Below, piece after piece: positions 5,694 through 52,294 of a DNA stretch of 64,000 bases. This DNA is from Macrostomum lignano (lineage: Eukaryota). A model generated the notes under the pieces. That model did not search any database and was not told the DNA's origin. It saw only the letters and a program-made list of their open reading frames with translations. Positions within the stretch are counted from its first letter, which is position 1; every line of letters starts with the position of its first letter. Location: NCBI GenBank assembly GCA_002269645.1, contig NIVC01002114.1, forward strand, positions 85,441 to 149,440, read 5' to 3'. Both the position numbers and the translations under genes were made by a program.

Positions 5694-7447
5694 ACAACAA
5701 CAACAACAAGGTACTGCTCCCGCCGGCCACGCAGTAGCCAGAAAGGGGGAGCAGTCAGAAAGCGCGTCTCTGGGCCATTGCCCTCAGGAAGTCGCATCCC
5801 CCTGCTTGGTCCGGGGCGCCAGCGTCACTCAAAAGTCGGTCAGGGTATCGCAACGTTCGCCCTTGGCCTCGCCTCCGCGGTCCCTGCAGCTTGAGCAGCA
5901 GCACGTCGTGTAGCGGCTCAGGACAGCGGGCCTCCGACCGGATGACGTGGCCAGCCAGTCGAAGTCGCCGCCCGCGCAGCAGGTCAGAAGGCCGCGTCAG
6001 GCGCGCCCTAGTGTAGAGCGCGGCATTGGTCTCGCTGCCTGGGCCGCTGCGCACTCCGAAAGCCGCACGCAGCATTGCCGCATGCGCAGCGTCCAGCTGC
6101 CTCTCCAAGGCGTCCGTCAGGGTCCAAGTCTCGGCGTTGTACAACAGGACAGTCTCGACGACTGCCTGAAACAGCCGAGCCTTGAGCCCGTCGTCCAGGG
6201 CCTCAGATTGGAGCACGGAGCGCACAGATCGAAATGCGGCCCAGGCCAGTCCTCGTCGTCTCTTCAGGTCGTCGGCAACGTCCGGCACGGAACCGCCGAG
6301 GTACACAAAGCGCTCGCAGCGGGTAAGCATAAATGCATTCCCGGCAGCGTCTCGGTAATTGATCTCGGCCGGCAAGTCGGAGGGCACCGTGAACACTACC
6401 GTCCTCCGCGCGTTCAGCTAAAGGCCGACCCGCGACGCTGCCGCCGTCAGGCCATCAAGCAGCCGCTGGGCACCTTCGTCCGTCGATGAAAGTAGCGCGA
6501 GGTCGTCCGCGTAGCCGAGAACGGAGAGCCGCTTCTCCGGGTGCCGCCGACTCGTGCGTCTTCTCAAAAGGAAGCCGTCATCCAGGTTGGGCAGGCCGGT
6601 TCTCAGCACCCAGTCCAGTGCCAGCACAAACAGAAAAGGCGCCAAAGTGTCACCCTGCAGCACGCCTGACGACGTGCTGAATTGGTCTGACAGTCCATCT
6701 GGCGTCATCACCGAAGCGGTCGTGTCCTGGTACATCGCCATGATGGCGGAAATCAGTTGCTCCGGTACATTGTACGCACGAAGCACGAGAGGCAGCGCGC
6801 CGCGAGCCAGCGAGTCGAAGGCCTTGAGGAAATCAATGAAGATCACCACGAGACTTGACTGATGGATGCGCGCCTCCTCGATGATGCGGCGGAGGGCTAG
6901 GATCTGCGTCACTGTGCCGCGATGTGGGCGGAACCCGTTCTGCTCAGTTCGCAGGAACTGGTCCAGCACAGGCTGTAACCGAGCCAGCAGCACCCGGTTG
7001 AACAGCTTCGCGGCGCAGGACATAAGCGAGATCCCCCTGTGCTCCTCCTTCCGTGTCGTGCCTGGCTTCTTCGGGATCGCGACGATGTGCGCGGTTGTCC
7101 ACTCGCGGGGCGCGGCATCTCCAGAAAGGACACCGTTCATCACACGAGCCACCTCAATGGCGACCGTTGTGACTCGCAGCACCTCGATAGGCACCTCGTC
7201 CGGTCCCGGGGCGCGACCTCCCGGCGCCTGGCGAGCGAACTGCACAACGTCGTTGCTGGTCACTGGCTGGGTGTTGAAATCTTCCTGCGACGGCAGCGCC
7301 GTCTCGAGCGGCAGTGGCATCACTTCTGGCAGAGGCGGTGGCGGCGCGTTGACGATATCGGCGAAGAAGTCGCGTAGCTCATTTCTGCGCGCTTCTGGCG
7401 TGTCGCCGGTCATTTAGCACCGTTCTCTTCTTGCGACCAGTCAAACG
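5694..7447 (-). mobile_element. 5'-truncated non-LTR retrotransposon (RTE-like) with target-site duplication
   Basis: RT-bearing ORF; identical 10-bp TSD TAAAAACGCA at 5684-5693 and 7448-7457; (TTG)6 3' tail on the minus strand (5692-5709); no endonuclease present. Confidence 0.9.
5755..7413 (-). pseudogene. Reverse transcriptase of the RTE-like LINE, one in-frame nonsense codon
   Basis: Motifs RGISL, QNGFR, FIDFLKAFDS, GVLQGDTLAPFLF, YADD, YLG, LLYNAETWTLT. ORFs 6418-7413 and 5755-6396 share a frame and are split by TAG at 6418-6420 (GL*LNARRT). Confidence 0.88.
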
Positions 7448-10385: not shown

Positions 10386-12120
10386 TTAGTTTGAGTAAAT
10401 TTGATCCAACAAGTCAAAGTCGTCTTCATCATCAGCCTCCATCGACTCTTCTGAAGAAGATGCGACAGCTCCAGCTGCCATCTCGAGCTGCTGTGAAGCC
10501 TGGCTCTGCTTCTTCACTCGAGTGCCGGCGTGCCTCAAATGTTCGGCCACGGCTAGGCCCACCGAAACTGCAGTTGCGTCCTTGAAAATGCCTCCTGCTG
10601 CATCTGAAGCAAAAAAAGTATAAATTGATAATTTGTATTTTTCCATGTCCATAACCTTATTAAAAACCGTTTCATTAACTGTTGCAATCTTCGATTTTAC
10701 TGCCTACTTAGTGGTTTAGATATTATATGCACTACTCATGTACTTACTAGCAATGATCGGCAGCAGTCCGAGACTCGAAAAACTCTTTTTTGATTTGCCT
10801 TGGCGGGTTGCTCCACGAAGGCTCATCTGAGCCGCCAGTTCATCGGTCATCAGAAGCCGCAGTATATTAAAGACTAGATGATTGAGTCGTCTCCCTCCAA
10901 GTGAGCGAAAGTGCGACACCTTGAATGGACGAGATAAAGTAGTTAAAATAATTACGAGCGTACCTCTGTGATTTTTTCGCCTGATATACTATGCATTCAA
11001 ATGATAGCAACATTGGCAGCTTACAGCGTGTTTGACAGCCTTTCGATCAGACTGAAGAGCCGCCACCCAGTTTTGTAAGGCAACGAACTCTGTATATGGC
11101 AGTCCATCGAACAGACTGTGTAAGTCACCGTCATCTTCTGAAGGTCCACCAGATGTGTGAGCCACCAACTTGTTCTGAAGGTCAACCAAAGAACTTTTCA
11201 CTGAAGTATGCTGTGCGCGAATCACACCTGTCAATAAATATTTTAGTCACATCTCTCTGTTGAAAATTAACCCTTTGCCATTTGGGGTTTTTCAAAGCTA
11301 TATATTACGTTCGTTTATACTACATTTAAATTTAAATTTACACTGCTAGACTACTCTATCTCAATGGATTATCTCATTCAATTGTCTGTCACAACTGTCC
11401 TCAGAAATTTAAGCGTTTCGAGTTTGAAAATTATGCAGACTCACTCTCCAGTCGCTCAACGGCTGCAGTGAGCTTCTCGACTTGTGAACTCAAGTTGGTG
11501 ATACTTAGGTTGATGCCTGCAAGCCCTTCCTTTGGCAAGCTTGAGACTTGGACTGGACCAGCTGGTGTTGATTATCCTGCTGTGCAGCTTGCCGAAACGT
11601 TTCGAGCGGCGGAGGTGGAGACGCAAGGGCATGAAGCGTTGGTGGGGGTGAATCTGGAGGTCGGGCCACTCGTCGACTTTGTCTGCCAACACGCGAGCTC
11701 CCAGCTTCCACAGCTTCATTGATGAAGCGACTGACTGTCTTTCGAAGACGAGGAGCATCAGAGTCGCTTGTTTCCACTGTCCCTTTGCTCAGAAAGCGCC
11801 GTCGTAGTTTAACGGCCTCTGGGAGAGTGGCTGAAGTTTAAAATTAAAAGGCATTTTCCCTGGTGTGAGATGCGATTGCCCAAGAAAGAATTGTTGAGTA
11901 ATTAAATGGAATGGACCCTTGTCTTACCTCGAGATCCGACAACTTCAACGGTTTCCACAGCCCAGTTCTCATTCGGTGTCCTGTGGCCTTTGATGGCTTG
12001 ATTGTACTCTGCTGCAGGGGGCCAGTGCACAGAAGTCCCGCTTTCAAACCATTCTTTTAGGACGATTTCTACACTATCGTCTTCAAAAAGAACCAAGACA
12101 AACCTGTTGTCCGATGACAT
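10386..12120 (-). pseudogene. Spliced DUF4806-like (BEN-related) protein, probable transposon accessory gene; one frameshift in exon 2
   Basis: Five phase-compatible GT-AG exons: 12120-11928, 11830-11445, 11227-11025, 10919-10748, 10603-10386. N-terminal FVLVLFEDDSVEIVLKEW..VHWPP; C-terminal LGGRRLNHLVFNILRLLMTDELAAQMSLRG..KKSFSSL. A frame change is needed near 11510-11530. Confidence 0.65.
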
Positions 12121-12577
12121 GCTGTCTCAAAGTTGTGCTAAATACGATCTTAAAGCATATAATCAGTCGTGATACATGCAAATCTTTGCGATAGGGAATG
12201 AAACGGAAATAAAAAACTAATGTTAGAATAGGCTTCATGGTTCAGATCTTCCGATTGGTTTGAAATTTTTGCATACAGGAAGGAGGTTTAAAAAATTTCC
12301 CCGCACGACCCAATGCGAAGCAGCTGAGCTGAATGTTACTTTAAAATTTAGTAGACTGTGAAGTCGCACGGCATTGGACGCGCCAACATCTGAACTCACG
12401 GGAGGCGCAATAGTGTTCATGCGACCCACGCTTCCAGCTTTACCAATCCAAAATTCCCAGTTCCATACTTTAAGTTTTTACACTTAACAAAATTAATTTT
12501 TTTAATTGCAGCTTTTTCATTTTAGACCCTTATGAGCTATTTATAAACTGCAGCATTTTACAAATATAACTATGATT

Positions 12578-12779
12578 CAGGGGCGGATCTATTCAAGGGC
12601 GGCCGCCCCCCAAAAACAGCTTGATAAAAAATATTGCTTCCCCTAAGACCTAAGTTTTTTGGGGGAGCCCTTTAACTTGATTTCTGCGCCCCCTAGCTAA
12701 AAAATTGGCGCCCCTGATATTTATGTTGGCGCCCCAAACTTGGACCGCCCCCTTAAATGAAATTCTAGACCCGCCACTG
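12578..12779. mobile_element. hAT-type MITE (202 bp)
   Basis: TIRs CAGGGGCGGATCTA / TAGACCCGCCACTG; 8-bp TSD CTATGATT (12570-12577) / TTATGATT (12780-12787), 7 of 8 matching. Confidence 0.8.
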
Positions 12780-13878
12780 TTATGATTATATTTGATTTCA
12801 TAATGTGTCCAACAACAAACAACTCGTGAAATCCAGTTGGGCAAGAAAAGATTCGTGCCTGTCTGTTGCAGATTTAAAATGCACGATTCGAAATTTTATT
12901 TCAATGTAGAAATTTATGCTACCTTAGGTTAATTAAAATTTATGAAGCAAATAAATACAAACTAAAAAGCTAAGTGGAGAAACTGACAAGAAGCGCAGGA
13001 GAAAATATGAAACTAATGGATTGATTGGGAAGAGGATTTCAACTTCTCGCGTGTTAGCCACTGGATATTGCACACTTTTGAGCAGTGGCACAGCAGAATA
13101 ACAGAATAGACAGATAAAAAATAAATGTGTTAATACGCCCGTATATGCCAATTTTACTTACTACAAGATGATTTAAAATATCAGGATCAAAAAATTCTAC
13201 AGCAATCAACGCGTACGCTCGTATCAGAGCGTCTGTTTACTGGTGGAAGGTCTTTTATTTTTGGAAAAGTTCACGTTCAGCCGGTTCAGGCAGGCTGTTT
13301 TTCTCTCACCGATTCCATATAGTGTCACTTTATTTGCACCTAAAATGCACCTTGTAAGAATATCATTCATTGAAGTTGGCTCAAGAATTCTTTGTTCCGT
13401 GCTTCTTTGTTCTTTGTGTTTTGCTTTAAAATGTCCCTAAGTTGGGGGTGGGGGACTAAATTCATTCTCAGTTAACCCGAAAGCAAGCATACGCTATATA
13501 TGTTGTACAGAGCTAGTATAGAATAATGCTATAGCATATGCTTGGCTGCAATTCCCACGATGCTTCAATATAGCTTCTTGATAAGAACAGATCTTATCTT
13601 TTATCAACCTTCTGACCAGGAAATATTCTCGTCGATCAATGAACTTGCTTTTGGTTAGAACTATATGCGCTTTGGCCTTGCTTTGCTTCTATAAACTAGG
13701 AGGTAACATGGTACAAATAAATTCATTCATTTCATGAATATGAAAAAAACCAGCTGCACAAAAATTATTGTTTTTTTCTATTGAATACAAAAAACAGAAA
13801 AAAACTAATGAATTCGAAGAACAGCGAGCTACACGGTAAATTACAAAAGCGGGGAATAAATTGAGGGGCCGTAAATAA

Positions 13879-14097
13879 TTATTCGCATCCTATAGTGTGC
13901 AACAGTGGAAAGGCAACCAACTTGCCATTTAGAGCGATAACAAGCGCTTTGCAGTGAAGTTCATCAATGCCTAGTATGCAACGGGTATCTGACAGGCTGC
14001 TCACAACAGAAATCATGTTGGTTTGGAAAGAGTTCACTGGGGTGTTATAAAGAGGCTCAGATGAGCGGAAGCGTCGCACATGCAAGTAGCAGGAATT
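13879..14097 (-). pseudogene. C-terminal fragment of a CACTA/EnSpm (CMC)-like transposase
   Basis: ...PLYNTPVNS...IDELHCKALVIALNGKLVAFPLLHT resembles the (F/Y)xxPxxS...K(C/A)...PLLH terminus of animal CMC-type transposases; co-oriented upstream of the DUF4806-like gene; catalytic core not found. Confidence 0.5.
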
Positions 14098-17000
14098 CCG
14101 GGAAAATGGGCAAATCCGGGAAAATCAATCAGGAATTGCCAAGCTGTATCAATAGCCTCAGCTTTGGGATTCTACACATCATTAGAGTGTGCCAGTCGGT
14201 ATCAGCCGCAGAAAGAATCGTGTCTCTAGATTAATCCGCTTTCCAGATATTCGAAGGCGGCGATTCGGGAAAATTCTAATGCATTCAAATGGGCAAATCC
14301 GGGAAAATCAATCAGGAATTGCCAAGCTGTATCAGTAGCCTCAGCTTTGGGATTCTACACATCATTAGAGTGTGCCAGTCGGTATCAGCCGCAGAAAGAA
14401 TCGTGTCTCTAGATTAATCCGCTTTCCAGATATTCGAAGGCGGCGATTCGGGAAAATTCTAATGCATTCAAATGGGCAAATCCGGGAAAATCAATCAGGA
14501 ATTGCCAAGCTGTATCAGTAGCCTCAGCTTTGGGATTCTACACATCATTAGAGTGTGCCAGTCGGTATCAGCCGCAGAAAGAATCGTGTCTCTAGATTAA
14601 TCCGCTTTCCAGATATTCGAAGGCGGCGATTCGGGAAAATTCTAATGCATTCAAATGGGCAAATCCGGGAAAATCAATCAGGAATTGCCAAGCTGTATCA
14701 GTAGCCTCAGCTTTGGGATTCTACACATCATTAGAGTGTGCCAGTCGGTATCAGCCGCAGAAAGAATCGTGTCTCTAGATTAATCCGCTTTCCAGATATT
14801 CGAAGGCGGCGATTCGGGAAAATTCTAATGCATTCAAATGGGCAAATCCGGGAAAATCAATCAGGAATTGCCAAGCTGTATCAGTAGCCTCAGCTTTGGG
14901 ATTCTACACATCATTAGAGTGTGCCAGTCGGTATCAGCCGCAGAAAGAATCGTGTCTCTAGATTAATCCGCTTTCCAGATATTCGAAGGCGGCGATTCGG
15001 GAAAATTCTAATGCATTCAAATGGGCAAATCCGGGAAAATCAATCAGGAATTGCCAAGCTGTATCAGTAGCCTCAGCTTTGGGATTCTACACATCATTAG
15101 AGTGTGCCAGTCGGTATCAGCCGCAGAAAGAATCGTGTCTCTAGATTAATCCGCTTTCCAGATATTCGAAGGCGGCGATTCGGGAAAATTCTAATGCATT
15201 CAAATGGGCAAATCCGGGAAAATCAATCAGGAATTGCCAAGCTGTATCAGTAGCCTCAGCTTTGGGATTCTACACATCATTAGAGTGTGCCAGTCGGTAT
15301 CAGCCGCAGAAAGAATCGTGTCTCTAGATTAATCCGCTTTCCAGATATTCGAAGGCGGCGATTCGGGAAAATTCTAATGCATTCAAATGGGCAAATCCGG
15401 GAAAATCAATCAGGAATTGCCAAGCTGTATCAGTAGCCTCAGCTTTGGGATTCTACACATCATTAGAGTGTGCCAGTCGGTATCAGCCGCAGAAAGAATC
15501 GTGTCTCTAGATTAATCCGCTTTCCAGATATTCGAAGGCGGCGATTCGGGAAAATTCTAATGCATTCAAATGGGCAAATCCGGGAAAATCAATCAGGAAT
15601 TGCCAAGCTGTATCAGTAGCCTCAGCTTTGGGATTCTACACATCATTAGAGTGTGCCAGTCGGTATCAGCCGCAGAAAGAATCGTGTCTCTAGATTAATC
15701 CGCTTTCCAGATATTCGAAGGCGGCGATTCGGGAAAATTCTAATGCATTCAAATGGGCAAATCCGGGAAAATCAATCAGGAATTGCCAAGCTGTATCAGT
15801 AGCCTCAGCTTTGGGATTCTACACATCATTAGAGTGTGCCAGTCGGTATCAGCCGCAGAAAGAATCGTGTCTCTAGATTAATCCGCTTTCCAGATATTCG
15901 AAGGCGGCGATTCGGGAAATTCTAATGCATTCAAATGGGCAAATCCGGGAAAATCAATCAGGAATTGCCAAGCTGTATCAGTAGCCTCAGCTTTGGGATT
16001 CTACACATCATTAGAGTGTGCCAGTCGGTATCAGCCGCAGAAAGAATCGTGTCTCTAGATTAATCCGCTTTCCAGATATTCGAAGGCGGCGATTCGGGAA
16101 AATTCTAATGCATTCAAATGGGCAAATCCGGGAAAATCAATCAGGAATTGCCAAGCTGTATCAGTAGCCTCAGCTTTGGGATTCTACACATCATTAGAGT
16201 GTGCCAGTCGGTATCAGCCGCAGAAAGAATCGTGTCTCTAGATTAATCCGCTTTCCAGATATTCGAAGGCGGCGATTCGGGAAAATTCTAATGCATTCAA
16301 ATGGGCAAATCCGGGAAAATCAATCAGGAATTGCCAAGCTGTATCAGTAGCCTCAGCTTTGGGATTCTACACATCATTAGAGTGTGCCAGTCGGTATCAG
16401 CCGCAGAAAGAATCGTGTCTCTAGATTAATCCGCTTTCCAGATATTCGAAGGCGGCGATTCGGGAAAATTCTAATGCATTCAAATGGGCAAATCCGGGAA
16501 AATCAATCAGGAATTGCCAAGCTGTATCAGTAGCCTCAGCTTTGGGATTCTACACATCATTAGAGTGTGCCAGTCGGTATCAGCCGCAGAAAGAATCGTG
16601 TCTCTAGATTAATCCGCTTTCCAGATATTCGAAGGCGGCGATTCGGGAAAATTCTAATGCATTCAAATGGGCAAATCCGGGAAAATCAATCAGGAATTGC
16701 CAAGCTGTATCAGTAGCCTCAGCTTTGGGATTCTACACATCATTAGAGTGTGCCAGTCGGTATCAGCCGCAGAAAGAATCGTGTCTCTAGATTAATCCGC
16801 TTTCCAGATATTCGAAGGCGGCGATTCGGGAAAATTCTAATGCATTCAAATGGGCAAATCCGGGAAAATCAATCAGGAATTGCCAAGCTGTATCAGTAGC
16901 CTCAGCTTTGGGATTCTACACATCATTAGAGTGTGCCAGTCGGTATCAGCCGCAGAAAGAATCGTGTCTCTAGATTAATCCGCTTTCCAGATATTCGAAG

Positions 17001-20000
17001 GCGGCGATTCGGGAAAATTCTAATGCATTCAAATGGGCAAATCCGGGAAAATCAATCAGGAATTGCCAAGCTGTATCAGTAGCCTCAGCTTTGGGATTCT
17101 ACACATCATTAGAGTGTGCCAGTCGGTATCAGCCGCAGAAAGAATCGTGTCTCTAGATTAATCCGCTTTCCAGATATTCGAAGGCGGCGATTCGGGAAAA
17201 TTCTAATGCATTCAAATGGGCAAATCCGGGAAAATCAATCAGGAATTGCCAAGCTGTATCAGTAGCCTCAGCTTTGGGATTCTACACATCATTAGAGTGT
17301 GCCAGTCGGTATCAGCCGCAGAAAGAATCGTGTCTCTAGATTAATCCGCTTTCCAGATATTCGAAGGCGGCGATTCGGGAAAATTCTAATGCATTCAAAT
17401 GGGCAAATCCGGGAAAATCAATCAGGAATTGCCAAGCTGTATCAGTAGCCTCAGCTTTGGGATTCTACACATCATTAGAGTGTGCCAGTCGGTATCAGCC
17501 GCAGAAAGAATCGTGTCTCTAGATTAATCCGCTTTCCAGATATTCGAAGGCGGCGATTCGGGAAAATTCTAATGCATTCAAATGGGCAAATCCGGGAAAA
17601 TCAATCAGGAATTGCCAAGCTGTATCAGTAGCCTCAGCTTTGGGATTCTACACATCATTAGAGTGTGCCAGTCGGTATCAGCCGCAGAAAGAATCGTGTC
17701 TCTAGATTAATCCGCTTTCCAGATATTCGAAGGCGGCGATTCGGGAAAATTCTAATGCATTCAAATGGGCAAATCCGGGAAAATCAATCAGGAATTGCCA
17801 AGCTGTATCAGTAGCCTCAGCTTTGGGATTCTACACATCATTAGAGTGTGCCAGTCGGTATCAGCCGCAGAAAGAATCGTGTCTCTAGATTAATCCGCTT
17901 TCCAGATATTCGAAGGCGGCGATTCGGGAAAATTCTAATGCATTCAAATGGGCAAATCCGGGAAAATCAATCAGGAATTGCCAAGCTGTATCAGTAGCCT
18001 CAGCTTTGGGATTCTACACATCATTAGAGTGTGCCAGTCGGTATCAGCCGCAGAAAGAATCGTGTCTCTAGATTAATCCGCTTTCCAGATATTCGAAGGC
18101 GGCGATTCGGGAAAATTCTAATGCATTCAAATGGGCAAATCCGGGAAAATCAATCAGGAATTGCCAAGCTGTATCAGTAGCCTCAGCTTTGGGATTCTAC
18201 ACATCATTAGAGTGTGCCAGTCGGTATCAGCCGCAGAAAGAATCGTGTCTCTAGATTAATCCGCTTTCCAGATATTCGAAGGCGGCGATTCGGGAAAATT
18301 CTAATGCATTCAAATGGGCAAATCCGGGAAAATCAATCAGGAATTGCCAAGCTGTATCAGTAGCCTCAGCTTTGGGATTCTACACATCATTAGAGTGTGC
18401 CAGTCGGTATCAGCCGCAGAAAGAATCGTGTCTCTAGATTAATCCGCTTTCCAGATATTCGAAGGCGGCGATTCGGGAAAATTCTAATGCATTCAAATGG
18501 GCAAATCCGGGAAAATCAATCAGGAATTGCCAAGCTGTATCAGTAGCCTCAGCTTTGGGATTCTACACATCATTAGAGTGTGCCAGTCGGTATCAGCCGC
18601 AGAAAGAATCGTGTCTCTAGATTAATCCGCTTTCCAGATATTCGAAGGCGGCGATTCGGGAAAATTCTAATGCATTCAAATGGGCAAATCCGGGAAAATC
18701 AATCAGGAATTGCCAAGCTGTATCAGTAGCCTCAGCTTTGGGATTCTACACATCATTAGAGTGTGCCAGTCGGTATCAGCCGCAGAAAGAATCGTGTCTC
18801 TAGATTAATCCGCTTTCCAGATATTCGAAGGCGGCGATTCGGGAAAATTCTAATGCATTCAAATGGGCAAATCCGGGAAAATCAATCAGGAATTGCCAAG
18901 CTGTATCAGTAGCCTCAGCTTTGGGATTCTACACATCATTAGAGTGTGCCAGTCGGTATCAGCCGCAGAAAGAATCGTGTCTCTAGATTAATCCGCTTTC
19001 CAGATATTCGAAGGCGGCGATTCGGGAAAATTCTAATGCATTCAAATGGGCAAATCCGGGAAAATCAATCAGGAATTGCCAAGCTGTATCAGTAGCCTCA
19101 GCTTTGGGATTCTACACATCATTAGAGTGTGCCAGTCGGTATCAGCCGCAGAAAGAATCGTGTCTCTAGATTAATCCGCTTTCCAGATATTCGAAGGCGG
19201 CGATTCGGGAAAATTCTAATGCATTCAAATGGGCAAATCCGGGAAAATCAATCAGGAATTGCCAAGCTGTATCAGTAGCCTCAGCTTTGGGATTCTACAC
19301 ATCATTAGAGTGTGCCAGTCGGTATCAGCCGCAGAAAGAATCGTGTCTCTAGATTAATCCGCTTTCCAGATATTCGAAGGCGGCGATTCGGGAAAATTCT
19401 AATGCATTCAAATGGGCAAATCCGGGAAAATCAATCAGGAATTGCCAAGCTGTATCAGTAGCCTCAGCTTTGGGATTCTACACATCATTAGAGTGTGCCA
19501 GTCGGTATCAGCCGCAGAAAGAATCGTGTCTCTAGATTAATCCGCTTTCCAGATATTCGAAGGCGGCGATTCGGGAAAATTCTAATGCATTCAAATGGGC
19601 AAATCCGGGAAAATCAATCAGGAATTGCCAAGCTGTATCAGTAGCCTCAGCTTTGGGATTCTACACATCATTAGAGTGTGCCAGTCGGTATCAGCCGCAG
19701 AAAGAATCGTGTCTCTAGATTAATCCGCTTTCCAGATATTCGAAGGCGGCGATTCGGGAAAATTCTAATGCATTCAAATGGGCAAATCCGGGAAAATCAA
19801 TCAGGAATTGCCAAGCTGTATCAGTAGCCTCAGCTTTGGGATTCTACACATCATTAGAGTGTGCCAGTCGGTATCAGCCGCAGAAAGAATCGTGTCTCTA
19901 GATTAATCCGCTTTCCAGATATTCGAAGGCGGCGATTCGGGAAAATTCTAATGCATTCAAATGGGCAAATCCGGGAAAATCAATCAGGAATTGCCAAGCT

Positions 20001-23000
20001 GTATCAGTAGCCTCAGCTTTGGGATTCTACACATCATTAGAGTGTGCCAGTCGGTATCAGCCGCAGAAAGAATCGTGTCTCTAGATTAATCCGCTTTCCA
20101 GATATTCGAAGGCGGCGATTCGGGAAAATTCTAATGCATTCAAATGGGCAAATCCGGGAAAATCAATCAGGAATTGCCAAGCTGTATCAGTAGCCTCAGC
20201 TTTGGGATTCTACACATCATTAGAGTGTGCCAGTCGGTATCAGCCGCAGAAAGAATCGTGTCTCTAGATTAATCCGCTTTCCAGATATTCGAAGGCGGCG
20301 ATTCGGGAAAATTCTAATGCATTCAAATGGGCAAATCCGGGAAAATCAATCAGGAATTGCCAAGCTGTATCAGTAGCCTCAGCTTTGGGATTCTACACAT
20401 CATTAGAGTGTGCCAGTCGGTATCAGCCGCAGAAAGAATCGTGTCTCTAGATTAATCCGCTTTCCAGATATTCGAAGGCGGCGATTCGGGAAAATTCTAA
20501 TGCATTCAAATGGGCAAATCCGGGAAAATCAATCAGGAATTGCCAAGCTGTATCAGTAGCCTCAGCTTTGGGATTCTACACATCATTAGAGTGTGCCAGT
20601 CGGTATCAGCCGCAGAAAGAATCGTGTCTCTAGATTAATCCGCTTTCCAGATATTCGAAGGCGGCGATTCGGGAAAATTCTAATGCATTCAAATGGGCAA
20701 ATCCGGGAAAATCAATCAGGAATTGCCAAGCTGTATCAGTAGCCTCAGCTTTGGGATTCTACACATCATTAGAGTGTGCCAGTCGGTATCAGCCGCAGAA
20801 AGAATCGTGTCTCTAGATTAATCCGCTTTCCAGATATTCGAAGGCGGCGATTCGGGAAAATTCTAATGCATTCAAATGGGCAAATCCGGGAAAATCAATC
20901 AGGAATTGCCAAGCTGTATCAGTAGCCTCAGCTTTGGGATTCTACACATCATTAGAGTGTGCCAGTCGGTATCAGCCGCAGAAAGAATCGTGTCTCTAGA
21001 TTAATCCGCTTTCCAGATATTCGAAGGCGGCGATTCGGGAAAATTCTAATGCATTCAAATGGGCAAATCCGGGAAAATCAATCAGGAATTGCCAAGCTGT
21101 ATCAGTAGCCTCAGCTTTGGGATTCTACACATCATTAGAGTGTGCCAGTCGGTATCAGCCGCAGAAAGAATCGTGTCTCTAGATTAATCCGCTTTCCAGA
21201 TATTCGAAGGCGGCGATTCGGGAAAATTCTAATGCATTCAAATGGGCAAATCCGGGAAAATCAATCAGGAATTGCCAAGCTGTATCAGTAGCCTCAGCTT
21301 TGGGATTCTACACATCATTAGAGTGTGCCAGTCGGTATCAGCCGCAGAAAGAATCGTGTCTCTAGATTAATCCGCTTTCCAGATATTCGAAGGCGGCGAT
21401 TCGGGAAAATTCTAATGCATTCAAATGGGCAAATCCGGGAAAATCAATCAGGAATTGCCAAGCTGTATCAGTAGCCTCAGCTTTGGGATTCTACACATCA
21501 TTAGAGTGTGCCAGTCGGTATCAGCCGCAGAAAGAATCGTGTCTCTAGATTAATCCGCTTTCCAGATATTCGAAGGCGGCGATTCGGGAAAATTCTAATG
21601 CATTCAAATGGGCAAATCCGGGAAAATCAATCAGGAATTGCCAAGCTGTATCAGTAGCCTCAGCTTTGGGATTCTACACATCATTAGAGTGTGCCAGTCG
21701 GTATCAGCCGCAGAAAGAATCGTGTCTCTAGATTAATCCGCTTTCCAGATATTCGAAGGCGGCGATTCGGGAAAATTCTAATGCATTCAAATGGGCAAAT
21801 CCGGGAAAATCAATCAGGAATTGCCAAGCTGTATCAGTAGCCTCAGCTTTGGGATTCTACACATCATTAGAGTGTGCCAGTCGGTATCAGCCGCAGAAAG
21901 AATCGTGTCTCTAGATTAATCCGCTTTCCAGATATTCGAAGGCGGCGATTCGGGAAAATTCTAATGCATTCAAATGGGCAAATCCGGGAAAATCAATCAG
22001 GAATTGCCAAGCTGTATCAGTAGCCTCAGCTTTGGGATTCTACACATCATTAGAGTGTGCCAGTCGGTATCAGCCGCAGAAAGAATCGTGTCTCTAGATT
22101 AATCCGCTTTCCAGATATTCGAAGGCGGCGATTCGGGAAAATTCTAATGCATTCAAATGGGCAAATCCGGGAAAATCAATCAGGAATTGCCAAGCTGTAT
22201 CAGTAGCCTCAGCTTTGGGATTCTACACATCATTAGAGTGTGCCAGTCGGTATCAGCCGCAGAAAGAATCGTGTCTCTAGATTAATCCGCTTTCCAGATA
22301 TTCGAAGGCGGCGATTCGGGAAAATTCTAATGCATTCAAATGGGCAAATCCGGGAAAATCAATCAGGAATTGCCAAGCTGTATCAGTAGCCTCAGCTTTG
22401 GGATTCTACACATCATTAGAGTGTGCCAGTCGGTATCAGCCGCAGAAAGAATCGTGTCTCTAGATTAATCCGCTTTCCAGATATTCGAAGGCGGCGATTC
22501 GGGAAAATTCTAATGCATTCAAATGGGCAAATCCGGGAAAATCAATCAGGAATTGCCAAGCTGTATCAGTAGCCTCAGCTTTGGGATTCTACACATCATT
22601 AGAGTGTGCCAGTCGGTATCAGCCGCAGAAAGAATCGTGTCTCTAGATTAATCCGCTTTCCAGATATTCGAAGGCGGCGATTCGGGAAAATTCTAATGCA
22701 TTCAAATGGGCAAATCCGGGAAAATCAATCAGGAATTGCCAAGCTGTATCAGTAGCCTCAGCTTTGGGATTCTACACATCATTAGAGTGTGCCAGTCGGT
22801 ATCAGCCGCAGAAAGAATCGTGTCTCTAGATTAATCCGCTTTCCAGATATTCGAAGGCGGCGATTCGGGAAAATTCTAATGCATTCAAATGGGCAAATCC
22901 GGGAAAATCAATCAGGAATTGCCAAGCTGTATCAGTAGCCTCAGCTTTGGGATTCTACACATCATTAGAGTGTGCCAGTCGGTATCAGCCGCAGAAAGAA

Positions 23001-23593
23001 TCGTGTCTCTAGATTAATCCGCTTTCCAGATATTCGAAGGCGGCGATTCGGGAAATTCTAATGCATTCAAATGGGCAAATCCGGGAAAATCAATCAGGAA
23101 TTGCCAAGCTGTATCAGTAGCCTCAGCTTTGGGATTCTACACATCATTAGAGTGTGCCAGTCGGTATCAGCCGCAGAAAGAATCGTGTCTCTAGATTAAT
23201 CCGCTTTCCAGATATTCGAAGGCGGCGATTCGGGAAAATTCTAATGCATTCAAATGGGCAAATCCGGGAAAATCAATCAGGAATTGCCAAGCTGTATCAG
23301 TAGCCTCAGCTTTGGGATTCTACACATCATTAGAGTGTGCCAGTCGGTATCAGCCGCAGAAAGAATCGTGTCTCTAGATTAATCCGCTTTCCAGATATTC
23401 GAAGGCGGCGATTCGGGAATATTCTAATGCATTCAAATGGGCAAATCCGGGAAAATCAATCAGGAATTGCCAAGCTGTATCAGTAGCCTCAGCTTTGGGA
23501 TTCTACACATCATTAGAGTGTGCCAGTCGGTATCAGCCGCAGAAAGAATCGTGTCTCTAGATTAATCCGCTTTCCAGATATTCGAAGGCGGCG
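14098..23593. repeat. 183-bp satellite array, 52 cores, nearly invariant
   Basis: Period 183 (GCATTCAAAT at 14281, 14464, 14647). Unit is a 133-nt core plus a 50-nt linker; first core at 14130, last at 23461. Confidence 0.98.
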
Positions 23594-26521
23594 TTTTGGG
23601 ATGACGTGACGAACGACGAGGACGAGGACCAGTACTCATTTTTAATTGAGAATGAGAAATTCTATTTTACAGAAAGGAACGAATGGATGCTCTACTGCAC
23701 TTAGAAGATCACGAAAGCACCCTTACAAATATAAAGGAAGTGGTTTATATTGCTTTGAAAGACAGACTTAATGCTGTAATTGGTTAGAAGGATAGGAAAT
23801 ATAGGAAAAATATTAGTGCATGGAGTTTACAGTATACACACACCTTTTGACTGTCAACTGTCACCCCACCGTGTCATTCTTTCTCTGTTGCGGTTTGGTG
23901 GGGGAGGCTGTCAGTGTTCTCTCAATTGGCCGCGCTTTAACCAATGGGAACAAATATTCTATAGAATTCCAGAACGATTCCATGGAAAAATCGTCTTTCC
24001 GTGAACCCAACTGTATTCTACAACTAATTGAGTAATCGGGTGTGATTTTCCAGTGGGTTATATTGATGCTTTCAAACGAATACTCTTTAGGACCTTACTG
24101 TCAGTAGTAGCTAACTACAACGGGCAACCATATTATACATGTATGAATACGTTTTTCACCCGACCATCAAAATCAAAATCAAAATATAAAGTTATTCGGC
24201 GCCTTCAGCAAACTGGAAACTAAGCTCATAATTAATAGTACGTGTAATGTAACTTATAACAGAAATATCTGATTCATTGTAATTGCCATCAGCTCAGCTA
24301 TAGCTGCCTGTACGCTCGTACATGTAGCAGAAAAACAGTTTCAGCTTCCGTATCGTCGTCCAGCGAATTTATTTTTTCATCTTATCTTCGAGCTACATGT
24401 ACAAAAAGCTTTGCATAATTAGTACAAGCGGGAACAGATTATCGTCTATTTTGTACAGGTATACAAACATGCGTATGATGCTACTAAAAGTAAATGTGCC
24501 GCAAATGTGCGGTATTTTCCTTCGTTGAATGTCCCACATTGTTCCAACGTTTTTTCAACAGCCCATACGACTATTCACTTTGCCCAAATATCCTTTTCGT
24601 TGGACGAACGTTTTTTGGCAGCCCGGGAGAGGTATAGGCGCCCTGAAATAATGCTCTCGATGCAGGCTCAGAGCACACACAGGGAACAGAATTTGAGAAC
24701 AAGACAAACAAAACCAAACCAACTTTATGGCTCTCTCCCTTTCTACCAGCTTTCTCAGTTCTCGCGCCTGTTCAAATCTGGTATGCGAGAGGGGTGAGGT
24801 CTGCATGCGGTCGAGACAGGACCTGCTGCTCGTCATTCTCTGTAGCATCTCGCATCAGCATCCTCTCCTCACACAGATCCCCAAATTTCTAATGGCATTC
24901 CCTCATCTGTCTAAGCGGCTCAAGCTACATTGTAAAGCATCCGGTTTAAGGCGGGCTGGGGTTAGCTGCATGTAGGCAGGCGAGAGGGCTAGAGGGGGTT
25001 AAAACCAGGCCACCAGCTGCCGCGCCGCTAAGTCCTGGAGCAGCAATGCGGAAAGGCAGACGCCGCCAACTCATTTCACACGCTTTGCTGAACTCAAACA
25101 CGCGCACAAACATGCTTAAGCAGGAATAGCAATCCCTCTATTTTCTTTATTATTGCATTTACATTTTTTGTGTTTTTTTTCTTGCAGACAGCTATTCTTT
25201 AACCGTTTGGATGCATGAGTGTGAGAATGCGATTGTAGGAATTACTGCATCGGACTACATTTCTTCAGATTAGTCTTTCACTCAAGCTGTCTCACTCTTA
25301 GAAGCATTGCTAAATAAACCCCAACTGCACGTTTGCAACAAGTCCAATCAGGAATTACACAATTAAAGAAATTTCCGTTGTGGGGGATCTACGGACAGTT
25401 GCTTCAATTTTGACTCCCGATGACAATTGACTTCTACTATTCAAAACCACCGATCAATATTCAAAATATTTTGACAGTCATCCAATGGCGGAATACCTTA
25501 ACGAAGCATTGTAACTTGTAAGCGTCATCTATGTGCTTGTGTATTCGAAACACTTACAGAATAATCGGTAATTATACTCGAAAAGTATCGACGAGGAACT
25601 TCCGAAAAAGTTCGACGTAAAAGCAGCCGCTCTCGGAGAAAAGTCAATCTAATCTTTTCCTCTTTTGAAGATGCGTATCGATCGGATTCATCCTGCAGAC
25701 TGCTCAATAATTGTCGACCAAGTTCTACCCTTCCTGCCCCAGTTCGATAAAGCCGTTGAATGCACTAGCAGCAGGACAATCCGATGGTGAATTCGAAGCT
25801 TGATCGTAGCAAGAAGTTTTCGGATGCAAATTTTCCTGGACGGAAATCGGTTTCTTCCACTCTCGCACGCATCGAGTAGCGGGAAGATTAATTCATCAAA
25901 CTGTGCTGTGGAGGAAGCCGTCAGATCGGGGTTGATGGCTTCGGTTAGCAACTGTATATATATATAGCTTGCTGGCTAGAACTGCTACCAACAAGACGAT
26001 TTCTCGTCAGTCTTTTTCCGTTAGCAACTTAAGTCAGAATCTCAATAGTAGAATCTCCCGGCGTCCCCGACTTAAGCAGATGGATTAGCCATCCATTGGA
26101 GCGAGAAATTTTCTGCAGCAAGCAGGGGAATCGGACACGACGGAAAAGGATCACGGATGCCGCCGGGACGAAAGCGTATTGACGCAGACAGATAGAGCGT
26201 AATCCTGAGCTGAGCTGATTCTTGAGCAACTCTTGCTTTCGCATGTAGCTATAACCGAGGGGTTAAATTGAGGACAGACAAGCTAGGAGGGGATTAGAGA
26301 TTTGGATTTCTAAGACTAGTTTTAAGCTATCTGTTTGTTGCAATCTTGATAAAAAGCGGATAGCAGGGGATTTTGTACAAATTCATCAAGTTATTCACGA
26401 TCCACATTAAATATCGGATAGTGAGGCTTGTTGTATGCCTGCGTTTAACTGCAATAATCACTGTCTATAGTACGGTTTTCAAACATAATTTAACATTATT
26501 TTATACCGACAGAGTTAAGAC

Positions 26522-37492
<10,971 letters not shown>

Positions 37493-37862: not shown

Positions 37863-40283
37863 AGTTTCGTCCGTCTTGTTTTCACTTGTGTGTACATGGA
37901 GTTAAATGCTTGTTATTCATTCTTAACCCCACAGTGCTACTGAGGCCGCAAACTCTGAAGGAAAGGAAATTTTAGCCGCCGGCCACAATAAATTTTTAGG
38001 GCACCTCCGCAGGCATACTACTGAAAAAAAGACTAAAACATACGCTCTGCTTTTTCACAACTTCAATTGCGAGTGACATATCTACGGGCTAGGTATTTTA
38101 GTACCTACTACGCTAGTATATGGTCGCAACAGTTTCAAAAGAAGTTTCCATCAAAAAAGCCAAATCTTAAATGACTGATGATATTTGTACAGTACATGTA
38201 CATACATTTACTCTTGCTCCTGTCCCTATTTTTAAAGTTTTAATTCGATTCTACCATAAGATAAAAGCTTTCCTAACAAATGCACAATCCAATCGTACGT
38301 GTTTTGTAAACTATAATTCAATAACTTAATGTCACGCTGAATTCACGTGTATTTCTTCATTATGAGGTGCACAATGTATAGACTTTAACACATGCTACGC
38401 CACCTTTGTTGCGATTGATGTATTGTTTCTTTTCCTGTGCATCCATCCCGTACAACGTAGCGACGTCCGCTAATTTGGATCCGACGTACCAATGCGAGGT
38501 CGATGGATCGATGTCGCTGGATAAAATTGCTATTCTTAAATTGCAACAGCGAATAAAGACGCATAGGTGGGCCGAACATACATGTATATGGTGTGATAAG
38601 ACTCATACCCATTTTCAAGCGCTGCGCCAAAACGCCAAAACGTCCATTTACTGTTACGGTACTTAATTGCTTCTTTTTAGCGTCTTGACTGTGTCTATCA
38701 ATGTTATGTTTTTGTGTGCTTTTATTGTACTTTATGCATGCATGTAAAAAGGGCACGATGTACATGGTATTACCGAAATAACTAAAAACACGATGATAAC
38801 ATATAGCATGAACATGCAACTATCAAATAACGTGTGAAGAATTTACGAAAGTCTTCCTACATGTTTATTACATGTAACTTAATGTGCACGGATCATTGCG
38901 ACGCTATAATTATTGCATTTTTGCGATTCGAATCATGCAAATTTTACTGTACTTAAGTCGCATCGTGTAAATGTACAATATGCAGATTTGGATTTATTTT
39001 ATTGCACAAAATTCATGTTTGTTTCACGAAAATAAAGGAGCTGGGACAATTAATGTCACTCAATCCAGCCCAATCGGAATACGCATGCTGCCAAAAAGTA
39101 GGGAGAAAAAGTGATAATTTTTCGTTTTACCAGGCCCGCGCGCGTGCTCATTAAATATAGTTATACTGCTGTTTTTCTTGGAAGATCCGAACCGATTCTG
39201 ATTCTGGAGTTGGTAATATGTGAGTGGGGGCAGAGAATTAAAGAAAAATAGTTTTTTTAGGGGTAAGTTGGTAAAGTATGCAATGCTCTGAGGTGGAGGT
39301 TTCAGTTAGCATGCAAGCAATTAATTATTAATATTCGAGTATTATTCGAGTATTATTTCACGTGAAATAATTAGTTATTTCAGTTATTTGTAAAAGTTAT
39401 TGTTGTTACTGTTATATTGTAAACTGTACTGGGGTGTAGGCGGTTTTCTAATGTTTGAATTGCCGCCTGCGAATTGTCTCGGCACTCGGAAAGCCGGAAA
39501 ATTTCTCGAGTTGATGCACTGATTTTTCTCCTTGGTTACTACGTCTGCCGGGGTCCTCAATTCCGGGGGGAGGGTAGTTGTAATCGCAGTCGAGTGGTCT
39601 TTTAGCGGCACGGTTGTTCAAATTGGGTCCTCAGACACCGTAAAATTCGTGATCTGTCGATATGCTCGATTTGTTACTATCAGTAGTAAAGTAGCGCTGC
39701 CACCACCGTAATTTCGTATTACGGAACGATAAGGGTCTCAGAGCTTTCTTTGAGTTGAGACTAATTGGTTATTTTACGCCCCCGCGGGCAAATGACTCAA
39801 TATAGACTAAAGGCTTCGATTAAGTACAACTGAATAAATATTAGATGATTGGTTATAATTATTATTATTATGTTCGCAAGGTAATTGTTAAAGCAAATTA
39901 TGTTTATTAGAGATATTGAAACAAGTTATTAAGCTGACTATGACGGGGTGATTCGGCGTGGACCGAGAGTTGCTCAGACTAAGTTAAATTTCTGCGGTAA
40001 GCCCAAAATATCAAACAAATGAACTAATTAACTCCACAAAAGACAAAACACGGGGAAGGAGGGAAGAAGGGAAGAAACACCAAAACAAACACGCTTAAAA
40101 AAGAGAGCGACAGGCAAACGGTTACATACATCAAAATTCGCTTACTTCAAAGAGGGGAACAAAGAGGGGAACACCGGGTGGGGCACAAGCACAAGCTGGA
40201 AAAAAGGGGGCAAAACCCGGGAAAAACATTAAAACAAGGGCGGGACCAAGGGAAGGAGCAGCAGGGGGAACAAAGGTGGGAAC

Positions 40284-43200
40284 GGAACGGGGGCCTACGG
40301 CCGACCTTCAAGAGGTGCCCCTGTTCTTAACTAACGGACCGTACCACCACCGAGCCTGCGAAGAAGACCAAGAGAACGCGTCGAACTCCGAAAACCTTCT
40401 ATCCGTCATGCGACTCCGCGGCGGCAACAGTGATATCTCAGTCCACCGCCGCCGGCCGCGTAGGAGACACAGGAGAGCAGCGTCGCGCAAAGCCGAGCCG
40501 GTCCAAGAGCTCCTCGTGCAGTTTAACTGCAATGGCATCAAAAGCCGTAATACGGAGCTGGCCCACAGGCTGGCCTCCCTGCGCCCCGCCGCTATACTCC
40601 TTCAGGAAACCAAGCTTAAGAAAGAAGAAGATTATAACCCGCCGCGGGGATACGTGGTGGCCTCCAGGGAAGACGGAGTGCATAACGCCGGCCCCGATGA
40701 CCGCGCTGTCGTGACACCTGCTCACCCAAATCGGCCACCCGACACTGACGGTACAGGCACCGCCGGGACACGACGCCGTACCAACCCGCGCTGCCGGCTG
40801 AGATTCCCAGGACTCCGCGAAAACTGGTGCGCCGGATGTCGCAGCGGCCGTACCGCCTGCAGCGTCCGTTTCACACCATGGCATGGCGCAGACAACCAAT
40901 CTGTTCAAACCAGTGCATCCGGACGAGAAACCACCAGCACGCCACCGCCAGCCCAGTCCACTATCCCAAAAACCAACAAAAAAATTACAGGACGGGGAGG
41001 TACTATGGTGCTCGTCCGCGATGACGTCCAGTACGACAGACTCAAAGTCGATAGAGAACACGACCTCCTGGACGTTGCCACCTGCCGCATCCGCCTCAAA
41101 GGACAGCAGCCGATCGTGATAGCATCTATCTATGCACCACCATCCAGCTGCCAACGTCCCGATAACACCTGGCAACCCAGCTTCACCAATCTCCCGACTA
41201 CCGGTAGAGTCATCCTCGGAGGCGACTACAACGCACACGGAAGCTGGGACCGCCACATTGATGAAGATCTCAGAGGCCAGACCGTCGACGAGTGGGTCGC
41301 CCGCAATGGGCTCGTCATCTGCAATACCACCTGCCACACACGCACCTGCCCCAGTACTGGCCGCCTCAGTAGCCCAGACGTGACCATCTGTAGTAGCACC
41401 ATTGCCGGATCCATCACGGACTCCTGGAAGACGCTACCAGACTGGGGAAGCGATCACCTGCCGATCGTTTTCGGCCTCCCAGCCTCTAACACCGGAAAGA
41501 CCCGTCACTGCGGGCAAAAACGCTGGATCTATAAGAAGGCAGACTGGGGAGCCTTCAGGGAGTCGCTAAATACCTGGGCAGAATCCGAACGCAACGACAC
41601 CACCTTAAACACAGAGGCCACACGCCTTGCCGAAGCCATCCTGAACGCAGCAAGACTTGCCATCCCGCGCAGCTCCGGGAAAGAGACGAGACGCCTGCCG
41701 TTCTGGAACGACGCCTGCGAAGAGGCCTCCAAAGCTACACGTTCCGCGAGACAATCCGCAGAAAAAGAACCGACACCAGAAAATATTATTGCCGCAAACA
41801 GAGCCCGCCACAACGCCTCAGGCTGTCTCCGGAGGGAGAAAAAAGCCTTCCTGTTCGACAAAGCGGCAAATTTCAGCCAGGACTCGGACATTTTTGGCTT
41901 ACTCCGCGCACTGAGAGGCGATGGTTTTAAAACTCCGGACCCGGCTGCCATCGTCAGGGCCGCCTCCCCAGACTCGCCGGAGCGCACCGCCCGCACTAAC
42001 AAAGAGAAGGCCGAACTCTTTTGCCAACTCTACGCCGAAGTTAGCCGAGTCCCCAGACGGAAAAATGACTCGGCCATCAGATACAAAGCGAACGAGGCCA
42101 CCACGCCTATGGGTGACCCCCAAACAGACGGCCCGGACGCCCCTTTCGAGATCGACGAGCTCCGCGCCGCTATCCGATGTCTCAAATCAGGGAAGGCTGT
42201 GGGAACCGACGGTGTCTCCAACGAGATGCTTAAACGCCTCCCGCCGGCCGCTGACAAAGCCTTACTCAGCCTCATCAACCGCACCTGGCGGGAGGGCAAA
42301 ACACCGACCAGCTGGCGAATTGGCACCATTATACCGATCCAGAAAAAAGGGAAAGACGCCGCATCACCGGATAACTACCGCCCCGTCGCACTTACCAGCT
42401 GCATCGCCAAGTGCGCGGAGCGCATGGTTCTGGCTCGTCTTAATTATGATCTGGAGAGCCGTGGCGGCCTCACGCCCACTCAAGCTGGTTTTCGTCGCGG
42501 TCGTAGCACCGAGGAACAGCTCGCGCGAGTCTGCCAAGCCATTTTTGACGGCCTCGAGAGTCTACCGGCGCTACGCAGCATCCTCTGCCTCCTCGACTTC
42601 TGCCGAGCGTATGACAGAGTCTGGCGCCTGGCCCTGTATGCCAAAATGCACCGCATGGGCATCCCCAAGCGCATCATCCGCTGGATCCGCGGCTTCCTGT
42701 CGGACCGTCACAACGCAGTCCGCTGGGTTAACGCCACGAGCCGCAACAGAGTCTTCCGCGAAGGTCTGCCACAGGGCAGTGTGCTAGCGCCCACGCTGTG
42801 GAATATCTATGTCAACGATTTAGCCCAAGCAGTCGCCGAGGCGAACCCTTTGGTTAGCCTCAGTCTCTACGCCGATGACTCGGCCTTACTGGCGACCGCT
42901 CGCACACTCGACATCTGTGCCAGAGAACTCCAACCAGCCCTGGATGCAGTGGCCGACTGGTGCCGAGATTGGAAAGTCTCCATTAGCACTGGGAAATGCT
43001 GCTACTCCACCTTCACTCTAGCGGCAAATGAAAACAACGGCAAACGGAGAGTGAACCTCCAGATCAACGGCGACAAGCTTGCCTTCGATCCAACACCGAC
43101 CTTCCTGGGACTCACTCTTGACGACAGCCTAAGTTTCAGCCACCATGCATCAAAGATCCGTAAAAAGATGGCCGCCCGCAGAAGACCTCTCACTGCCCTC

Positions 43201-45946: not shown

Positions 45947-46906
45947 TGCTATGCTAGGTCTAATGCTGTAAAAATTATAAGATTTCACAATTTTTCTGGC
46001 CTAATTTTATAATTAGTAATTTATTAATAATATTACTATTTAGCTAATTATAGCTTTATATTATATATAAAAATCAAATTTAAAATTTAAAAAATAAACA
46101 ATAAAATAGACTCCTTTCTTCAATACTCTAATGCTAAACATTATATTAGCATCAGTGACAATGGCAATCTCTATAAGGGATTGGTCTTAGTCTCTTGTTA
46201 GCCCAAAAGAGCAATTAAAAACTAGCTAAATAAATAGTAGAGCTATATGGCTTTGACCATATTTGGACATGTAGGTACAGGTAAGAATTGACTATGATCA
46301 GGGTCATGATCATGACAAAAATGGTGATCTTTCATATTAGATATAGCCTATAGGGGCCTATTTAATTTTTTTTGTTAATTTCTTATATAATTTTTTATAA
46401 GTTCTATCTTTAATGTCTACAGTTTACAATCAATGTAATAATAAGATAGAAAGCTAATACCCTAACTAAGATTTTGAAATCAAGGGTGAAGTAACTAAAA
46501 AGGTCAGAGTTTTAATCAAAGAAATATCATTTTTATGATTATTTGCTTTATCTATATTCATATCTTGTTCCATATGGGGAAATCCAAAAATCGGGGGCAA
46601 GTTTTATGAAAATTCGTTTTTTGGCAATTTGAAAGCAATAAAGCTATAAAATAAATTTATTCAAGTTTTTAAAACGTTAAAAAGTCTATTAAAGCACAAA
46701 TTATTTTCGTATAGCTTTATTTTTAATAAAATGATTTGTTAAAACGGTAAGTTTAATTACGACCTAAAATGAGTCTAATGAAAATGATTGAAAAGCTATA
46801 ATAATGTATTTTATTAACTTTAACTATCTTATAATGTTACACTCTATAATTCTACAACATATTTAACATTATTTTAAGGTTTTATTTGTTTATCACTTTC
46901 GTTACT
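45947..46906. repeat. Segment A copy 1 (960 bp, AT-rich), duplicated at 47724-48683
   Basis: Same sequence from TGCTATGCTAGGTC to CACTTTCGTTACT at offset 1777. Confidence 0.92.
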
Positions 46907-47006
46907 AATCTAATATCAATTTCGTTACCATTAGCTTAATAGCCTACTTGCAGTAGGAAATTAGTGCATAGTTTAAATAACCAAATTTCTTTAATCTTTA
47001 CTGCAG

Positions 47007-47603: not shown

Positions 47604-47723
47604 TTTTATCTGACTGCAGAGAAATGTTTGATAATTTGTGTGCTAGCAATAAATTAGTAGCACAACCGTTTGTAAAAAGTGCTCAGTTTTTGACCAATAG
47701 ATACGAGAATAATAAGATAAAAG

Positions 47724-48683: not shown

Positions 48684-48757
48684 CTTGACAACGTGCATTT
48701 TGTAGAGTTCGTTTGCAATAAATTGTATTCAACGTAAGTTTATTATTTAAACATACA

Positions 48758-52200: not shown

Positions 52201-52294
52201 TGGACTAAAATTAGCCCATTAGCTTAATAGCCTACTTGCAGTAGGAAATTAGTGCATAGTTTAAATAACCAAATTTCTTTAATCTTTACAGCAG

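Follow-up and report, generated by a model that had tools for sequence, protein, structure and literature searches.

The locus considered here raises the question of how a long array of almost identical tandem repeats came to begin at the point where a transposase relic breaks off. The array lies in a stretch of 64,000 nucleotides of Macrostomum lignano DNA (GenBank assembly GCA_002269645.1, contig NIVC01002114.1, positions 85,441 to 149,440 of the forward strand), which is referred to as the window and whose own numbering is used throughout. It consists of 52 head-to-tail units of 183 bp at 14095-23593, with no strand assigned, and it adjoins on its left the C-terminal tail of a Tnp2/DUF4218-type transposase. 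The explanation favored here, to which we give a probability of about one-half, is that a local stretch of ~168-184 bp, beginning where the dead transposase gene is broken off, was amplified in tandem at its original site very recently.

The array and its divergent first unit

The array was delimited with Tandem Repeats Finder (TRF), from the spacing of an anchor sequence, and by arithmetic on its span. TRF makes a single array call here, at 14104-23601, with a period of 183, 51.9 copies, 99% matches, 0% indels, and a score of 18954; the anchor CAGGAATTGCCAAGC occurs 52 times, 49 of the spacings being 183 nt and two being 182 nt. The 52-fold array of ~9.5 kb reported in a first-pass annotation of this DNA is therefore confirmed. 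Alignment to the consensus unit places the array within the phase ATT/CGGGAAAAT...GGCGGCG, and its span of 9499 nt equals 52 × 183 − 16 − 2 + 1, that is, exactly 52 units once four small indels are counted. Both edges are sharp and are flanked by unique sequence. Because there are exactly 52 units in one phase, the locus has the form flank + unit × n + flank, which is the form made by local tandem duplication.

The copies are highly uniform, with 47 of the 51 full monomers identical and only six differences in the whole array. Three of these six are in the first unit, which accounts for 1.8% of the array length (binomial p about 1e-4, by arithmetic on the monomer comparison). The interior variants revealed by the monomer comparison are all in the A-run of the first CGGGAAAAT motif, which is shortened by 1 nt (to GGGAAAT) at 15917-15919 in unit 10 (the copy starting at 15777) and, through an identical change, at about 23053-23055 in unit 49 (the copy starting at 22913), and which carries an A>T substitution at 23420 in unit 51. 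These A-run variants are possibly homopolymer sequencing errors. The two identical deletions, 39 units apart, were also considered as the mark of a block duplication, but this was rejected because one unequal exchange offset by 39 units could not yield a 52-unit array, and independent slips or errors are the better reading. The array is very young and has the head-to-tail order and high identity of a satellite or long tandem repeat. No second copy of the unit is present elsewhere in the window (54 kb around the array), and Smith-Waterman comparison against 300 shuffles detected no unit-like sequence in the flanks past the array edges. It is a young, satellite-like tandem repeat of an ordinary kind, probably specific to this locus.

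The unit had been described as a 133-nt core (CAGGAATT...GGCGGCG) joined to a 50-nt linker containing the motif CGGGAAAAT twice, and sequence inspection and monomer comparison agree with this, the order in the linker being ATT CGGGAAAAT TCTAATGCATTCAAAT GGGCAAATC CGGGAAAAT CAAT. It should be kept in mind that the division into core and linker is one of 183 possible cuts of the repeat circle. The first unit (14095-14262, 168 bp, no strand assigned), in a global alignment to the consensus unit, aligns along its full length except for an extra C at 14098, a G>A change at 14152, and the absence of the 16 nt TCTAATGCATTCAAAT. The resulting gap is bordered by AAAT on each side, so that the shortened linker can be explained by one microhomology deletion or, equally well, by an insertion in the copy from which the others descend. 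Since half of all differences fall within 1.8% of the length, the first unit is either older than the burst that produced the other copies or stood outside it.

Two copies of CAGGAATT frame the shortened linker, as reported previously. The left copy (14090-14097) constitutes the last 8 nt of the recognizable flank and, read on the minus strand, specifies N-S-(C) of the transposase tail, and the right copy (14130-14137) is the first 8 nt of the core, as in every unit. The 32 nt between them (14098-14129) are CCGGGAAAATGGGCAAATCCGGGAAAATCAAT, and the left junction reads in the order CAGGAATT / CCGGGAAAAT / GGGCAAAT / CCGGGAAAAT / CAAT / CAGGAATT; with its flanks, the short linker forms a small cluster of GGGAAAT-like motifs with the pattern A-B-x-B-y-A. 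The core and the beginning of the right flank contain GGGAT-type motifs as well. At the right edge, again as described earlier, the final core closes with GGCGGCG at 23593, and the first 8 nt of the right flank are TTTTGGGA (23594-23601), which matches at 6 of 8 positions the ATTCGGGA that follows every other core; TTTGGGAT (23595-23602) is found inside the core too. Of the 50 linker nucleotides, 32-34 already adjoin the unique left flank, and the linker resembles its surroundings. Neither the window nor the metagenome, viral, and prokaryote collections yielded a source for the linker; the best donor in the window for the 16-nt TCTAATGCATTCAAAT is a 13-nt exact match at 10991-11003 (E = 0.8). 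The proposal that the linker is foreign is not supported, given its partial presence beside unique flank, the whole number of units in one phase, and the lack of a source in these collections.

The transposase relic

An 81-codon open reading frame (ORF) at 13882-14124 on the minus strand was characterized with phmmer, BLASTP, the context of its homologs, and a family hidden Markov model (HMM). A phmmer search with this native ORF against 1.84 billion representatives returned three proteins (E = 3.3e-6, 3.2e-4, and 9.3e-4); residues 11-77 (about 13894-14094) align at 33-40% identity up to a common FP(I/L)LH ending, and BLASTP gave 36% identity over 67 amino acids. On the contigs of the three homologs, each match is the last ORF, downstream of Transposase_21 (Tnp2)- and/or DUF4218-like ORFs, for which the Pfam matches are each weak (Transposase_21, E = 4.6e-4 and 0.02; DUF4218, E = 7.8e-5, 0.0058, and 0.03). 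The homologs can be aligned along their length, and the family HMM made from this alignment finds the tail with E = 1.4e-16 within the window and makes no second match in the 64 kb. The sequence match is remote but significant and indicates that the left flank carries the C-terminal tail of a Tnp2/DUF4218-type transposase, in line with the transposase-like frame of the first-pass annotation. Transposases of the Transposase_21 (Tnp2)/DUF4218 type are ones that we take to belong to the CACTA-Mirage-Chapaev group. The three contigs of the homologs (L001-L003; ENA ERZ27272053, Logan SRR23946970 and SRR23525758) are AT-rich and have a Tnp2-like part, a DUF4218-like part, and the tail in 2-4 ORFs each, an architecture that suggests a widespread, poorly annotated animal transposase family with a C-terminal tail for which there is no Pfam model.

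The ORF is a truncated relic and not a gene, and it ceases to be recognizable right at the left edge of the array. In all three homologs the DUF4218 domain is 83-95 residues upstream of the tail; neither Pfam nor the family HMM found a DUF4218 part in the right flank, where it would be expected, or a Transposase_21 catalytic domain anywhere in the window. A DUF4218-like motif in the right flank (23864-24094, minus strand, ...DDFSMESFWNSIEYLFPLVKARPIERTL...) was considered and dropped, Pfam, tblastn, and the family HMM all being negative. The unit has no significant match to the Tnp2/DUF4218 family, but conservation among the homologs is poor in the region immediately upstream of the tail, where a match of the unit could escape detection. 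About 1.8 kb downstream of the tail, and like it on the minus strand, broken ORFs of a DUF4806-like kind (10389-12126; Pfam DUF4806 E = 0.042, under the family cut-off) begin ...FVLVLFEDDSVEIVLKEWF... and may be part of the same dead element.

The first-pass annotation held that the core is a native continuation of the transposase frame, which becomes apparent when the 32-nt insert and one CAGGAATT copy are removed. Deletion of 14098-14137 does extend the minus-strand frame, from 72 to 103 codons (...LIQLGNSCYLHVRRF...), although the gain is 31 codons and not the 33 claimed, and with a local stop frequency of 5.3% per codon, 31 stop-free codons have a chance probability of about 0.19. The collapsed ORF has no Pfam match, and a 129-residue reading of it, with the stop as X, has zero relatives among 5.8 billion proteins in a word-indexed search. 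Three candidate upstream peptides were also fused to the tail, and the fusions were scored with a profile built from the three homologs, 1221 random local peptides serving as the null. The tail alone scores 56.6 bit. The splice into the core raises this to 57.0 bit, a gain of 0.4 that is matched by 47% of the random peptides; the unspliced reading through the short linker (FSRICPFSRN) gives 61.7 bit (+5.1, matched by 1.8%), and joining flank directly to flank gives 58.0-59.0 bit (+1.4 to +2.4, matched by 10-23%). In tblastn, every homolog favors a different reconstruction, by 0.4-4.2 bit, and the match to a larger family profile begins at ORF residue 9. As judged from these sequences, homology lends no support to the splice, and the scores at most hint that the short linker is native coding sequence.

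The 8-bp duplication had also been viewed as a possible footprint of a hAT transposon. An 8-bp target-site duplication is what a hAT element would leave, but CAGGAATT is non-specific in this respect since it also starts every core. The 32-nt insert begins with CCGGGAAAAT and ends with GAAAATCAAT, which are direct and not inverted repeats, and inverted repeats are absent both just inside the 8-bp repeats and between the flanks; indeed, no inverted or direct repeats of >15 nt are shared by 11000-14097 and 23594-26600, and no terminal repeats bound an element. Pfam scans of the flank ORFs contain no hAT domain, and the adjacent relic is Tnp2/DUF4218-like. These observations do not support a hAT footprint.

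Proposed local amplification and its alternatives

The array, with its sharp edges, integer unit count, and divergent first unit, and the relic beside it lead us to infer the following order of events and mechanism. The ancestral locus would have had the form flank-unit-flank, with the start of the unit in a cluster of GGGAAAT-like motifs and the right flank opening with the similar TTTTGGGA. A first duplication would then have joined GGCGGCG to ATTC(C)GGGAAAAT, after which the two copies would have diverged by one substitution and two indels, one of 16 nt between AAAT repeats and the other of 1 nt, and the right-hand copy would have been multiplied rapidly to give 51 identical copies. This multiplication might have proceeded through six to ten unequal sister-chromatid exchanges, through out-of-register re-invasion during break repair, or through rolling-circle copying with re-entry by homology; these routes are indistinguishable from sequence, as all yield the same result. 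With this mechanism the whole unit is most likely local DNA, most of the linker included, and no foreign piece is needed. Other copies of the element would be predicted to read ...GGAATTCCGGGAAAATGGGC... upstream of the tail. The array ends fit amplification in place, which the first-pass annotation had also proposed. The composition of the unit is like that of the flanks (GC 0.45 versus 0.39-0.43; CpG observed/expected 0.98 versus 0.81-0.97), linker-like motifs are present on both sides of the array, and other tandem arrays and identical duplications in the window, described below, are in keeping with such an origin. In the standard model, a satellite can be founded by any tandem duplication, and a burst of amplification then gives identical copies (PMC8822648), and monomers at the edges are the most variable in satellite arrays (PMC11610590).

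Several points weigh against this explanation. The search for the unit in the host genome extended across the 64-kb window, so that a dispersed family is possible, and units whole in number would equally be left by a circular multimer that was linearized and inserted at a single break. The presence of CAGGAATT exactly at the border of flank and array and before every core is accounted for only as part of a motif cluster, and the junction GGCGGCG/ATTC uses the TT.GGGA microhomology uncleanly. The 5.1-bit gain for the reading through the short linker comes mostly from one of the three homologs and is gone with a profile from a longer alignment. Finally, the fact that the relic ends exactly at the array edge is accounted for by no model.

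A stronger form of local amplification is that a satellite has been caught at its birth, as a single-locus repeat that formed at the break truncating the transposase gene and that has kept its pre-amplification copy as its first unit. This is a tentative proposal, with the odds somewhat against it; if it is true, the founder, the first junction, and the burst are all legible at one locus.

The principal alternative is that the array is a member of a dispersed satellite family and came from elsewhere, either as a multimer of extrachromosomal circular DNA that was opened once and joined into a break by the relic, or by gene conversion, with later expansion possible. A circle cut once would bring the same phase to both ends as well as a whole unit number, short imperfect matches are present at the left junction (AATT/GATT) and at the right one (TTTTGGGA/ATTCGGGA), and a break would account for the relic stopping where the array starts. 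Most satellites with units of 150-200 bp are multi-locus families, which counts in favor of such an origin. Satellites in gene-rich DNA spread in this way, with microhomology at their junctions (PMC7403614, PMC11610590). The absence of a second copy in the 54 kb around the array is a weak test of a dispersed family, but a strongly divergent first unit beside 51 near-identical ones is not predicted by it, and direct joining of the flanks gives no significant gain in homology. If the array had been inserted, the earlier locus would read ...GTAGCAGGA(ATT)/TTTTGGGATG... and have no unit. An origin elsewhere is considered rather unlikely. The possibility that the array exists but owes its length or its uniformity partly to assembly or polishing, with copies averaged or their number mis-estimated, is improbable. 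The identity of 47 of 51 copies, the restriction of the three interior variants to one A-run, which is typical of homopolymer errors, and the presence in the window of other 100%-identical repeats (a 273-bp array, (TCTA)217, and a 960-bp duplication) are what such an artefact would produce; the edges, however, are unique and clean, position-specific variants have been kept, and 9.5 kb is within the reach of current long reads.

Still less probable is the model of the first-pass annotation, in which a native 133-nt core from the transposase was looped or circularized via a foreign 50-nt linker and copied 52-fold in place, with CAGGAATT marking the insertion. It draws on the fact that CAGGAATT closes the flank and opens each core, on the 31 codons freed by a splice at CAGGAATT, with one stop in about 75 codons of frame, and on the nature of the flank frame, which is a genuine transposase tail whose upstream part must once have existed. 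In addition, the 14 residues closest to the splice (RIPKLRLLIQLGN) fit loosely to the hydrophobic strand that the homologs have at this place, and tblastn lengthens the match to one homolog (P0059) by 14 residues, but this extension is worth 0.4 bit in tblastn and profile alike, which is no better than random peptides, and the open frame, as noted above, is expected by chance and is without Pfam match or relatives. The DUF4218 domain should fall in the right flank and is not there; an additional partial linker and 8-bp duplication at the left end would not be made by rolling-circle copying and re-entry by homology; no linker source has been found, nor terminal inverted repeats for a hAT element; and more separate events are needed. 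The model would give an unamplified locus that reads ...GTAGCAGGAATT/GCCAAGC...GGCGGCG/TTTTGGGA with no linker, and other copies of the element would read ...GGAATTGCCAAGC..., with the core directly after CAGGAATT.

Among known systems, the euchromatic satellites of insects (1.688 and Rsp-like in Drosophila; Cast1-9 in Tribolium castaneum) are similar in several respects: their units are of about nucleosome length, their kilobase-scale arrays lie between genes, recent bursts have left their copies very similar, the units at the edges vary more, and the junctions show short matches (PMC7403614, PMC11610590). They differ in being multi-locus families with proven circles, whereas here one locus is seen and its copies are more uniform (47 of 51 identical). 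The model of satellites born by tandem duplication (PMC8822648) shares with this locus unique flanks around an integer number of units, an edge copy that is older and divergent, and a burst of identical copies, but it is a general model, and at this locus the founding single-copy state is known only by inference. Satellites derived from transposons include tandem repeats inside non-autonomous DNA transposons (PMC9659126), and the present array likewise abuts a Tnp2/DUF4218 relic; in contrast to them, its unit has no detectable transposase homology, and the array has no terminal inverted repeats. The relic itself resembles the last ~67 residues of Tnp2/DUF4218 transposases, including their FP(I/L)LH end, but is a tail only, the catalytic and DUF4218 parts being missing from the whole window.

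Genomic setting and implications

The window is animal DNA that is rich in tandem repeats and has a CpG observed/expected ratio close to 1 throughout. The array is between two genes that point away from each other. One has cadherin repeats (26522-31752, plus strand; Pfam Cadherin 5e-46), and its first exon, with a signal-peptide-like start, is 2.9 kb to the right of the array; the closest relative of this exon is only 30% identical. To the left, on the minus strand, are the broken DUF4806-like ORFs already described. Among 28 other flank ORFs, Pfam detected nothing except a weak DUF4806 and a weak B-box. The searches for a function of the unit revealed no ORF, RNA family, or unusual fold: Rfam, hammerhead-type families included, gave nothing at curated thresholds and only noise at E up to 5, no tRNAs were found, and the folding of the unit as single-stranded DNA is unremarkable (z = −1.35 and −0.62). 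Exact pieces of core and linker have zero matches in metagenome (two scans), viral, and prokaryote-genome collections.

At least eight further unrelated tandem arrays and several 100%-identical duplications are present in the window. The 273-bp array (35219-36893; 6.1 copies, 100% identical) is preceded by an inverted partial copy of its unit (213 bp, 35003-35215; palindrome at 35003-35452), the whole structure lying between (TCTA)217 at 34123-34989 and (CTAT)61 at 36879-37121; this arrangement, in which tandem copies come after an inverted start, is suggestive of a fold-back event. The TCTA repeat (216.8 copies, 100% matches) is unusually long for an uninterrupted microsatellite. Recent segmental duplications, in a region of about 30% GC (45947-53006), comprise 960 bp at 100% identity (45947-46906 and 47724-48683) and 791 bp at 99.9% (46928-47718 and 52216-53006), the latter with identical 153-codon ORFs (47142-47603 and 52430-52891). 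A long interspersed nuclear element (LINE) ORF at 40276-44580 on the plus strand has 1434 uninterrupted codons and 60% GC, compared with 44% for the window; its relatives possess domains for endonuclease, reverse transcriptase, and RNase H. Over 43% of its length this ORF shares 91% identity with UniParc UPI0007A11279, and the element may have been active recently. A second reverse transcriptase-like fragment is at 5755-7413 on the minus strand. The motif GGGAA/TTCCC is present in five of nine otherwise unrelated repeat units (those at 7736, 14104, 48758, 55726, and 58509), with 9 matches in about 800 nt of consensus versus 1.4 per kb in the non-repeat background, a comparison made post hoc; the idea that these units have a break-prone or protein-binding motif in common is no more than a guess.

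At present, the array is one more young tandem repeat in a repeat-filled window. Its position 2.9 kb upstream of a cadherin-type gene makes it a candidate for a length-variable element near a promoter. The origins of satellites are usually deduced late, from old and scrambled arrays, and a single-locus array that has preserved an older copy would be a clean natural example; given the unamplified state in a haplotype or a sister species, this locus could help to separate plain duplication, template switching, and circle re-entry as routes by which satellites arise.

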